Position numbers and translations under genes: made by a program. The notes beneath the pieces are model-generated. The model had not been told where the DNA came from, ran no database searches, and worked only from the letters and a program-made list of their open reading frames with translations. Shown one piece after another: positions 34,655 to 63,798 of a stretch of DNA of 64,000 nucleotides. This stretch comes from Oculina patagonica (taxonomy: Eukaryota): assembly GCF_052425735.1 (NCBI RefSeq), contig NC_135761.1:52018001-52082000 (forward strand), in the 5' to 3' direction. Within the stretch, counting starts at the first letter, position 1, and each line of letters opens with the position of its first letter.

Positions 34655-37600
34655 ATGGTTTCCCGTCACAGAATATCTTTGATATTACCAGTTATTTTTA
34701 TCGCAACAACGAGGCTGGCCGTATCCATACCTTACCATGGTCCACAAAATTTTCTCGGTTACTTATATTGGACACGAAGGTATCCCTCTCTGGGATACGA
34801 GGACTGGGATGGTTTTTGGAATAATTATTACAGCGGAAGAAAACAGTATAACCGTGGCTCGTCGGAGACTTCGGGGCTGGCTTGCCAAGGATGTGTTTGT
34901 GACGAAGTCATACAAGAATTAAAGTGTCGTGGAACACCGTCAACATTGTGAGTTTATCAGGCAATTTTGTCATATTTACTACATTTTCTTTTTTTCGTTA
35001 GGTTATCGGGAGAGTTACTTTCTTTTAAAAATCAGTTTTGAGGATTATTGTGCCAATAAATGCTGGTCAGTAAATGAAATGTAATGCTTCAACATTTAGC
35101 ACGCACTTCGAGGGTTTGAGGCTATTTTTATATGAATGCAGTTTACACCGTGTTGGTTGAAACGTTTTCCACACCCAATTACCGAGGCGAGAATTAAGGA
35201 GCAGATAATGTTGAAGAAACAACGGCCAAAGTGTCGAAGAAAACATTTCAGTTTCGCTTTTCAGTATGTGTTTGTAGTTGCAGAGGTTCTATAAGACACA
35301 TTGTCACTGGATAGTTTGCCAAATGCCGATACAAATTATTCTAAAACATTTTATTTACGCCTATAATTGACATCAAACAAGGGCAAGTAGAAAAACACCG
35401 AAATCAAACATGTTCTAATATTGGATAATTATATATAATAACCAGTCTGAAAACGTGTTTAATGTAAAATCTCGTACGATAAGCTTTGTACCTCCTTTGT
35501 TGCTCGAAACAAACACAGTTGAAAGTAATTAAATTTGTGCTATGCCGCTCATCTGCCCGAACCGGATGCTATCCCATCACAAGTTATTTGCGGTATATTT
35601 GGCAAAACAAAGGTTGTATAAGCATATTATAAGCATACCGGATACGTTATGCTCCAGTGGGAGCTAAGAGCACCAAATTCATACAGGCACCTGGGTAGGT
35701 GTACAGTAGGTAGGTACCGAGAGGGCAGTGTCTTTTCTGGGAACTCCATCAATGTGACGATCATGGCCAGACCTTGAACCTGGGACCACTTAACCTGCGA
35801 TCAGGCGTTTTTTCCCTTGCAAAGACGAAAGTAGTAGGGAGGGAGGGCATAATTTCATGTTAGGGACCACTGGGCCCGGAGTTCAGCCAGCTAGGGCCAT
35901 GACGCGCCTCCCCAGGACTGTATTTTCTTCATTAACCAACTGGTCCCGAGAAAACGCTAGGTCGTCAAGCACAACGTCGAGTTTTAAATAAACGTCTCCG
36001 GTGTTTAATCGAGAAAATGCAGTGGAGTATATAAGATATTACACGGCAGACCTACACGATGCACTGATAATATCTTGTATATTAATTTTTGTTTTGTTAC
36101 AGGACTGTGCGAAATAAAGTGATCAAGATCGTCAGAAATGAACAGTTGCCAAAAAGCTTTACAGAGATGTAAGAACTAATTATTTCTGTTGAGATTATAA
36201 AAAGGTCTGAATAGCAATTATAAAAATTTATAATGAAAGCTTTGAAAAGAAGAGACGTAGCTCGAGCAACTTAACTACTGGTTAGTTTAGAAATAAAATA
36301 TAGAAATTTGCCATTCTACCACACTACCAAAACTTAGGGAAAAATCGTTTTTATCGATTTTGTTTTTGTTTTCAACGCCAAAACCAGTTTCCACATAACC
36401 TGTTTAAATTATTATTCAGCTCCCAAAATACATTTGTAACTCTAAAATTTATTAATAAAAAATAAAACAAAGCTAGCAACCTCGCTAACTGACTAACTAT
36501 TAGCTTACACCACGCGGCCAAGTGAAAAATTAAAAAAAATACAGTAGATTCAATAAATAAGAATAACTCGTTATCGTTGAAATTTGTCATTTCTACTAGA
36601 TACTTGTCGCCAGCATTGATTCAAGCAGATCGACACTTCTATGACAATCGAGTCTACGATCGTCCGAAATGTTATTATATTTCACCTTTTATCTTCATAG
36701 CAAAATTTTCAAATCTCAACTACAAGACATTGAAGATGAGGCTTTCCATAACTTGACACAACTTCGAAAATTGTAAGTATATAATGTAAACTTTTTCGAC
36801 AGAGTAAACATAGCAAAAAAGTAGAAATCGTCTGTGTGTTCACTAGCAAAACGTTTTTAAAACCACGATGTGTAACACTGACCATCTGTTGCTTAACAGG
36901 AATCTGGCCATGAATGAACTGAATGATTTTCCTGACTTGTCTACTAACACAGCTCTGCAGGAACTGTAAGTGTAAAACCATGGTCCAGTTGTTCAAAGGG
37001 CTGATAATAATATCCACCGGATACTCAATAGCTATCCAGTGATTAAGAGTTGAAAGGAAACGACGCTTTCCTTTGGATAGTGATGCATCCGATGGATACA
37101 TCCTGTGAACAACTGGGGCAAGAGGAAAATAAGTCAAACCATAGGCTTTCGTATGAACCGATGACATAGTGATACACTAGGAAGACAGACAGAATGTACA
37201 AGGATCAGGCTAACCAACACGGCAAGCAAATAGCCGAGAGTAGGATAGGGAAAAAAGCCATTTTTTAAATATCAGTCGGTCTTAAATTGTGATGACAAAT
37301 TCACCGTGCACAGTAACAAGACAAACGCTGTAAATAGTTAATAATATAATATATGACACAACGATTCTTTTCTTTTCAGCGATTTATACCAAAACAAGAT
37401 TAGACTCTGGCGCCACAACTACACGGCTCTCCCAAAAAATCTAATTAAAATGTGAGTAAAAACTGTTGTTTGTTAATTTCTGCTCTGATAACACAAAAAG
37501 GAAATACTGTCTAATTCACTGTTTTATTTTGTAGAATTCTCATAGAAAACCAGCTGGATTGGATTCCTGATAAGTGGTTTGATCTGCCAAATCTGAGATA

Positions 37601-63798: not shown

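Follow-up and report, generated by a model that had tools for sequence, protein, structure and literature searches.

The 64,000-nucleotide stretch of Oculina patagonica DNA analyzed here (RefSeq contig NC_135761.1, positions 52,018,001 to 52,082,000; hereafter the window) almost certainly carries, at positions 34655-63798, the 5' half of a scleractinian Mega-thrombospondin (Mega-TSP) gene, i.e. 43 coding exons encoding residues 1-1325 out of 2812 in total. The original prediction had taken this gene for a candidate undescribed recognition receptor. It is instead a member of a family that was published in 2019 with coral representatives, and its product has no transmembrane segment. The family itself is already described, and the modest new point is that a fibro-slime/PA14 module is conserved across all retrieved cnidarian and bilaterian Mega-TSPs.

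Exact spliced mapping of the RefSeq protein P0128 ("uncharacterized protein LOC144650562 [Oculina patagonica]", 2812 residues) onto the window returns 43 exons on the forward strand of 34655-63798. Their joined translation reproduces P0128 residues 1-1325, the N-terminal 47% of the protein, with 0 mismatches (100% identity), which bears out the uninterrupted frame of at least 1320 residues that had been proposed. All internal exons possess an AG acceptor and all 43 exons a GT donor. A scan for open exons bounded by AG and GT reports on the same strand a series of ~72-nucleotide exons, each encoding one leucine-rich repeat (LRR) in a common phase. The exons are the following:

34655-34947, forward strand: exon 1 (293 nucleotides, residues 1-98), with the ATG, the signal peptide, a Trp/Tyr-rich N-terminal segment and a Cys cluster (LRR N-cap)
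36103-59207, forward strand: exons 2-38, 37 single-LRR exons (residues ~99-1005), itemized in the next six lines
36103-36168, 36701-36772, 36900-36965, 37380-37451, 37535-37603, 39012-39083, forward strand: LRR exons 2-7
39265-39348, 40335-40406, 40550-40621, 41664-41747, 42363-42440, 42860-42937, forward strand: LRR exons 8-13
43396-43476, 44005-44058, 44603-44674, 45189-45266, 45645-45722, 45812-45883, forward strand: LRR exons 14-19
45989-46054, 46514-46585, 47331-47402, 50951-51022, 51329-51400, 52188-52259, forward strand: LRR exons 20-25
52791-52892, 53279-53353, 53613-53696, 53803-53874, 54015-54083, 55049-55126, forward strand: LRR exons 26-31
55808-55879, 56103-56171, 57469-57540, 58016-58087, 58402-58473, 58902-58967, 59136-59207, forward strand: LRR exons 32-38
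60028-60209, forward strand: exon 39, last LRR and LRR C-terminal cysteine cap (residues ~1006-1066)
60600-60733, forward strand: exon 40, start of the FN3-like beta-sandwich (mapping, RNA, AlphaFold, Foldseek)
61590-61842, forward strand: exon 41, rest of the FN3-like beta-sandwich and linker (100% identical to P0128; RNA contig pieces over 61588-61842)
62348-62414, forward strand: exon 42 (67 nucleotides), first strand of the fibro-slime/PA14 domain (YFLDVTFYDF), splice sites read directly
63475-63798, forward strand: exon 43 (324 nucleotides), N-terminal half of the fibro-slime/PA14 domain (FSDWF...FFPVDGRGWG...RDC...RNYG)

The LRR exons measure 54-102 nucleotides, mostly 72, and all lengths are multiples of 3; every LRR intron therefore lies in the same phase. 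About 36 repeats had been predicted: the array stands, its count being corrected to 37 LRR exons. The Trp/Tyr-rich segment of exon 1 is conserved and aligns with the N-terminus of the Nematostella Mega-TSP (P0096). The predicted signal peptide is found at residues ~6-27, the sole strongly hydrophobic stretch of P0128 according to a Kyte-Doolittle scan, which is not a dedicated signal-peptide predictor. The C-cap falls, as proposed, in exon 39, and its four cysteines are invariant in alignment A3. Exon 42 opens with CTCCAG after ttttag and closes with TTCAG before gtaatt, while exon 43 opens with AGCTGC after ctttag and closes with AATTATGG before gtatgt. The codons split across exons 42 and 43 give ...FYDFR/AADGDF... 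The motifs previously quoted are exactly those of these two exons, and residues D215/F216 of the exon 42 strand are almost invariant in alignment A3. Exon 43 stops inside a Gly codon, its donor GT lies at 63799, and the gene runs on past the window.

For exon 43 (107 residues), phmmer analysis against 1.84 billion representatives reports just 62 matches. The long ones (2866-2952 residues) align at their residues ~1140-1290, and Pfam assigns them many LRRs, a cadherin domain, F5/8-C, EGF, five thrombospondin type-3 repeats, TSP_C and a ConA-like domain. A word-indexed search returns ~50 such proteins from echinoderms, hemichordates, amphioxus, molluscs, annelids and cnidarians, among them the UniRef entry "Mega-thrombospondin, Nematostella vectensis" (P0096), with which the window is collinear over residues 7-1328 in a chain of 34 high-scoring segment pairs. 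Searches by tblastn with distant Mega-TSPs recover the large exons only, the 24-residue LRR exons requiring a low-stringency chain. A second search yielded full-length coral proteins including P0128, and orthologues of the window gene are annotated in RefSeq. Pfam and NCBIfam analyses of the individual window exons return no match, because the exons are too short and TIGR02148 covers a region past the end of the window; a protein-atlas search for relatives of exon 43 returns only bacterial clusters at low recognition and is uninformative.

Pfam analysis of the whole of P0128 reports LRR_8 in 17 stretches (E 2e-96) and, beyond the window, Cadherin (residues 1550-1599, E 2e-9), cEGF/EGF_CA/EGF_3 (residues 1927-2083), TSP_3 in 5 stretches (E 1e-40), TSP_C (residues 2375-2570, E 2e-78) and Laminin_G_3, a second ConA-like domain that follows TSP_C (residues 2579-2724). 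The order of parts is signal peptide, N-cap, 37 LRRs, C-cap, FN3-like domain, fibro-slime-type PA14 domain, cadherin, EGF, five TSP type-3 repeats, TSP_C and ConA-like domain. Mega-TSPs are defined by a signal peptide, ~1000 residues of LRRs, central cadherin domains and a C-terminal region of the canonical TSP type, together with a second ConA-like domain, a length above 2700 residues and no coiled coil (PMC6526912). The signal peptide, the ~1000 residues of LRRs, the cadherin domain, the TSP C-terminal region, the second ConA-like domain and a length above 2700 residues are all present in P0128; the gene therefore belongs to this family, for which coral members from Acropora digitifera and Porites australiensis have already been listed (Shoemark et al. 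2019, PMC6526912). Judged from the sequences, the window gene is orthologous to the Nematostella Mega-TSP (NvMT, UniProt A0A346ASF3), which has the same order of parts, a similar length (2805 versus 2812 residues), 52-63% identity in the larger exons and the same C-terminal H-x-E-L. No PA14/fibro-slime domain is annotated for NvMT in PMC6526912, the paper that also contains the coral relatives AdMT and PaMT. As compared with canonical thrombospondins such as COMP/TSP-5, Mega-TSPs share the EGF, TSP type-3 and TSP_C cassette, which in the coral gene lies entirely outside the window, add an N-terminal arm made of LRR, FN3-like, PA14 and cadherin domains as well as the second ConA-like domain, and are devoid of the coiled-coil oligomerization domain (PMC6526912).

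A hydropathy scan of the 2812 residues finds no hydrophobic segment besides the signal peptide, and therefore neither a transmembrane nor a glycosylphosphatidylinositol (GPI) segment; a membrane-anchored LRR receptor is not supported. The C-terminus of P0128 reads ...NNRRRRSIRS...RHSEL. Among ~35 further Mega-TSPs, nearly all those of cnidarians, echinoderms, hemichordates and amphioxus end in H-x-E-L (HSEL, HEEL, HAEL, HTEL), resembling a KDEL-type endoplasmic-reticulum retrieval signal, and 10-20 residues upstream of it a basic site, YPNN-RRRR(S), is conserved; in molluscs, many Mega-TSPs end instead at or just past a YPNN-type motif. This pattern suggests that the tail may be cleavable. The terminal sequence of Mega-TSPs has been called non-conserved (PMC6526912).

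Transcript data agree with the mapping. DNA runs that contain the window include a "coral metagenome". RNA runs from three organisms cover ~14% of the last 10 kb of the window, about its exon content, and RNA contigs from four runs were placed on 58001-63990. One contig of 2093 nucleotides joins 60043-60209, 60600-60731, 61588-61840 and 63473-63706, and the 67-nucleotide stretch between its last two pieces has the exact size of exon 62348-62414 (RNA run X16). Other contigs carry 1195 and 1488 nucleotides 5' of 60043 that correspond to LRR exons, and RNA depth is present over LRR exons 35, 36 and 38. At the other end, contigs cover 63470-63798, those ending on 63798 extending 200, 374 and ~1600 nucleotides outside the window. 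From these joins and extensions it follows that the gene is transcribed, that 62348-63798 is spliced to the FN3, C-cap and LRR exons just as had been proposed, and that the transcript continues past the window. The introns 60756-61043 and 62400-63400 contain dispersed repeats with a summed RNA-contig depth of up to 3e5 and many chimeric joints; this depth probably represents abundant transposable-element transcripts outside the transcript of the gene.

Every cnidarian and bilaterian Mega-TSP retrieved possesses, C-terminal to the FN3-like domain, a module of ~260 residues that had been recognized in the window as fibro-slime/PA14. The TIGR02148 Fibro_Slime model (curated cutoff 45 bits) scores P0128 at 45.5 bits, and exceeds the cutoff in P0133 (54.8), P0134 (50.1), P0093 (53.7), P0095 (56.2), P0105 (53.0) and P0022 (within 50-56); others score 34-44 bits, e.g. 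39.9 for Nematostella and 36.6 for Acanthaster. The alignment with the hidden Markov model (HMM) begins at "NYGFT", residue ~1322, where exon 43 ends, so that what the window contains is the domain's N-terminal half, outside the part covered by the HMM. In true fibro-slime proteins, the counterpart of this half is the segment in front of the HMM region. A Difflugia (Amoebozoa) protein that has four TIGR02148 domains is matched by exon 43 (E 4e-12) immediately upstream of one of the four. Two further weak phmmer matches, P0049 (a TPR protein) and P0020 (devoid of PA14), look like chance repeat matches, and the profile of alignment A1 finds nothing significant among the PDB sequences (best E 0.35).

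Past the window, the annotated product continues as ...RNYG/FTAAVRTSFNFSGQENMAFAGGEELWVFING, i.e. GFT...GGEELWVFIN. The next exon thus continues with G-F-T as had been anticipated, whereas the anticipated GDDD(V/L)WVFI-like motif is present as a variant only, its canonical form being absent. G-D-D-D-(V/L/I)-W-(V/L)-F gives way to G-G-(E/D)-(E/D)-L-W-(V/L)-(Y/F) in 47 of the 47 Mega-TSPs; the composition of the acidic pair varies (E in 24 and D in 23 at its first position, E in 37 and D in 10 at its second) and its acidity is invariant. The Difflugia protein P0015 and the PKD/PA14 protein P0059 keep GDDD(V/L/I)W, a motif that we take to be typical of the fibro-slime family by our own reading and not by a curated rule. 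In the searched library, the papers listed for "fibro-slime" concern Fibrobacter, the rumen or other microbial systems, with no animal protein among the matches listed. Within the Mega-TSPs, a PA14 domain (InterPro IPR011658) has been recorded for the Hydra magnipapillata protein HmMT only, in its central region (PMC6526912).

Structure prediction assigns a fold to the whole module. The AlphaFold2 model of the Stylophora domain (44 aligned sequences) has a pLDDT of 90.8 and a pTM of 0.90, and that of residues 1001-1480 of the window gene a pLDDT of 86.3. Foldseek analysis against the AlphaFold database (AFDB) Swiss-Prot set returns Dictyostelium Psi proteins at all of ranks 1-19 (E 3e-13 to 2e-9, probability 1.0), with alignments that span model residues 2-244, i.e. 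the whole domain, query and targets both being predictions. Among AFDB clusters, the matches (E 1e-14 to 1e-6) bear the names "PA14 domain-containing" or "Fibro-slime domain-containing". Against the PDB, plain Foldseek is dominated by low-TM legume-lectin matches, and PA14 domains come on top only after VIA-align re-alignment. The 45 best solved structures are then, with few exceptions, PA14 domains or glycosidase PA14 inserts (Z 6.5-9.4): Cea1A (9.4), RsgI (9.2), KpFlo2 (8.8), a Marinomonas adhesin (8.6), the PA14 insert of a Kluyveromyces beta-glucosidase (8.2), GH31 (7.9) and Epa/Flo (6.5-7.5). A PA14 fold is supported for the modelled domain, the Z values being moderate and the weight lying in the uniformity of the list. 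The preceding exons 40-41 are modelled by AlphaFold as a seven-strand beta-sandwich, and Foldseek analysis of the three-domain model reports tandem FN3 structures (neogenin FN5-6, integrin beta4; probability 1.0) whose TM scores are low because the query is multi-domain. The FN3-like domain that had been postulated is found in this form; as Pfam reports no FN3 match on the window exons, "FN3-like" is a claim about the fold only.

The Mega-TSP domain can be compared with several groups of proteins. Dictyostelium PsiA-PsiS and the amoebozoan or bacterial fibro-slime proteins (TIGR02148) have the same ~250-residue domain by predicted fold (E 3e-13, TM by query 0.5-0.6) and by sequence (the Difflugia match), with the motifs YDF, F..WF, FFP.DG.G and NFGFT in common; identity between Psi/fibro-slime proteins and Mega-TSPs is 15-21%, GDDD(V/L)WVF in the former standing against GG(E/D)(E/D)LWV(F/Y) in the latter. 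Unlike in these proteins, the domain is present in Mega-TSPs as a single copy within a metazoan matrix protein. The solved PA14 lectins (Cea1A 5a3l, KpFlo2 6hos, Marinomonas RTX adhesin 6m8m/5j6y, RsgI 6qe7, Epa1/Flo5) have the beta-barrel in common with it over 120-160 residues, with Z 6.5-9.4 and an identity of just 5-15%; in Mega-TSPs the N-terminal half, which is the window part, is longer, and the calcium site is putative. The hydrozoan Mega-TSPs (Clytia P0105 and the EukProt sequence P0098 that groups with it) exhibit an extra cysteine-rich insert before the domain.

Several observations weigh against these assignments. Residues 1326-2812 lie outside the window and are tied to it by the 100% identity of residues 1-1325 and by the RNA contigs that pass 63798. 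The TIGR02148 match is marginal on P0128 and below the cutoff in Nematostella and several bilaterians, while Pfam PA14 (PF07691, gathering score 24 bits) reaches 12.9 bits at best (E 0.098) in one of 8 Mega-TSP domains and gives no match in the other 7. VIA-align Z values of 7-9 fall in the range that its makers call "middling". GGEE or GGDE in place of GDDD leaves calcium and glycan binding putative, and the functional reading of a coral Mega-TSP is drawn from homology.

To approach the age of the module, a maximum-likelihood tree was computed for the region that spans the C-cap, the FN3-like domain and PA14, from 21 rows of alignment A3 with the other 26 left out. Bilaterians (100/99) and anthozoans (97/98) each form a clade in it, the window gene falling inside the anthozoan one, and there is a hydrozoan pair (96/94) with long branches. 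Such a topology fits a module inherited vertically from the cnidarian-bilaterian ancestor or earlier, and excludes that corals received it by recent transfer. Of the two origins that had been left open, ancient or horizontally acquired, the ancient one thus stands and recent acquisition does not. With the C-terminal cassette as query, no ctenophore, sponge or placozoan Mega-TSP was retrieved, and the module is therefore not datable before that ancestor. Scleractinians form two well-supported paralogue clades (100/100 and 100/99), P0128/P0131/P0136 versus P0134/P0093/P0095/P0133, whose placement relative to Nematostella and an octocoral is not resolved by the tree. Both clades hold "robust" (Oculina, Stylophora) and "complex" corals (Acropora, Montipora, Porites), and the lineage of the window gene also includes Montipora and Acropora LOC141877629. 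A single 26.5-Mb contig of Acropora palmata contains three Mega-TSP loci, and a single 64-Mb contig of Oculina contains two.

Regarding function, Mega-TSP expression is dynamic in embryos and adults of Nematostella and Hydra, and knock-down of the Hydra protein blocks head regeneration (PMC6526912). By orthology, the product of the window gene may play a developmental or regenerative role. By homology, it would be a giant extracellular-matrix glycoprotein, secreted into the pericellular matrix or the mesoglea, whose C-terminal thrombospondin cassette would bind calcium and cell-surface or matrix partners. The predicted folds suggest an N-terminal arm for ligand binding, made up of the long LRR solenoid and the PA14/fibro-slime barrel, in which the PA14 module would most likely bind glycan via the invariant acidic pair (G-G-[E/D]-[E/D]-L-W) at the GDDD position. 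In lectin-type PA14 domains (Flo5/Epa1), two adjacent Asp at the equivalent position hold the calcium that binds the sugar. The Mega-TSP pair at this lectin calcium position, E/D-E and not D-D, is a plausible but unproven candidate metal site. Carbohydrate binding by the module is suggested by its predicted fold and by the reputation of the Fibrobacter fibro-slime proteins, described as cellulose-binding in PMC4668043. That a fibro-slime-type PA14 barrel with a family-specific GG-E/D-E pair constitutes a universal, unannotated module of cnidarian and bilaterian Mega-TSPs is a tentative proposal, to which we grant somewhat less than an even chance.

A soluble recognition role is also compatible with the data, in which the product would mainly be a secreted pattern- or symbiont-recognition molecule that binds microbial glycans through its LRRs and lectin-like PA14 domain, and not a structural matrix protein. 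LRR solenoids and PA14 lectin domains do serve microbial and glycan recognition elsewhere, the solved structures that match best are PA14 domains with which adhesins bind sugars, there are pentraxin exons 5-20 kb upstream, and corals retain two old paralogue lineages. However, P0128 has no membrane anchor, adjacency to pentraxins is no evidence of shared function, and the architecture is conserved one-to-one from cnidarians to amphioxus, non-symbiotic animals included, which speaks for a conserved role in the matrix or in development, as in Hydra. We therefore regard recognition as unlikely and prefer the matrix role.

Two other explanations concern the gene itself. The 2812-residue model could be an annotation fusion, the LRR-FN3-PA14 part being an independent gene upstream of a thrombospondin-like gene, and several database models of the family are indeed truncated or fused (e.g. 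P0081, P0090, P0146). Against this, independent annotations of more than 40 species show the same architecture and length (2750-2950 residues), the Nematostella Mega-TSP has its own sequence record (MF962901; Table 1, PMC6526912), RNA contigs extend 200-1600 nucleotides past exon 43, and this exon stops mid-domain and mid-codon and therefore cannot be the last one; a fusion is very improbable. A recent horizontal transfer of the fibro-slime/PA14 module into corals from bacteria or amoebae would account for a domain that, outside animals, is found mainly in bacteria and Amoebozoa. Yet the module occupies the same position in the Mega-TSPs of anthozoans, hydrozoans, echinoderms, hemichordates, amphioxus, molluscs and annelids, is interrupted by introns in the window gene, and yields a tree with bilaterian, anthozoan and hydrozoan groups. 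As far as the sequences tell, transfer is refuted for any date after the cnidarian-bilaterian ancestor, and we give a recent one practically no credence.

Upstream of the Mega-TSP exons, the window contains the following features:

31623-31915, forward strand: second copy of the 293-nucleotide first exon, which has an ATG of its own, begins with a signal-peptide-like segment and has its GT donor at the corresponding position
13609-14037, forward strand: exon for a pentraxin C-terminal half (Pfam Pentaxin, E 5e-26)
28897-29316, forward strand: exon for a pentraxin C-terminal half (Pfam Pentaxin, E 5e-29)
3987-5114, reverse strand: open reading frame (ORF) of 375 residues
6533-7660, forward strand: ORF of 375 residues, inverted and 100% identical to the former
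5130-6251, reverse strand: third ORF, of 373 residues, between the 375-residue pair

The two first-exon copies share 72% nucleotide identity over 227 nucleotides (31695-31921 versus 34727-34953). The RefSeq model P0128 uses the downstream copy (34655-34947) and not 31623-31915, whereas the best chain against the Nematostella Mega-TSP chooses the upstream copy, which also matches starfish and scallop N-termini and may be an alternative first exon. The Pentaxin exons confirm the pentraxin cluster that had been noticed nearby. Pfam analysis of the 375- and 373-residue ORFs (3987-7660) returns no match. In a protein language-model search, the 375-residue ORFs cluster with animal helix-turn-helix (HTH), GIY-YIG and reverse-transcriptase proteins, which points to a Penelope-like retroelement for this pair.

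Instead of a possible new receptor for immunity or symbiosis, the gene is to be seen as a member of a known family of matrix proteins, and the 2812-residue protein that RefSeq calls "uncharacterized" can now be named a Mega-TSP. Its fibro-slime/PA14 module, missed by Pfam and marginally caught by TIGR02148, is apparently constant in cnidarian and bilaterian Mega-TSPs, and the family is among the few in Metazoa to contain this domain, which is elsewhere known from Amoebozoa and bacteria. The module supplies a concrete, testable candidate for the glycan-binding site of the family. If the acidic pair is a working calcium/glycan site, Mega-TSPs would be matrix lectins; their LRR, FN3 and PA14 arm would then share a domain with the secreted Psi factors of Amoebozoa, inherited or acquired before the cnidarian-bilaterian split.

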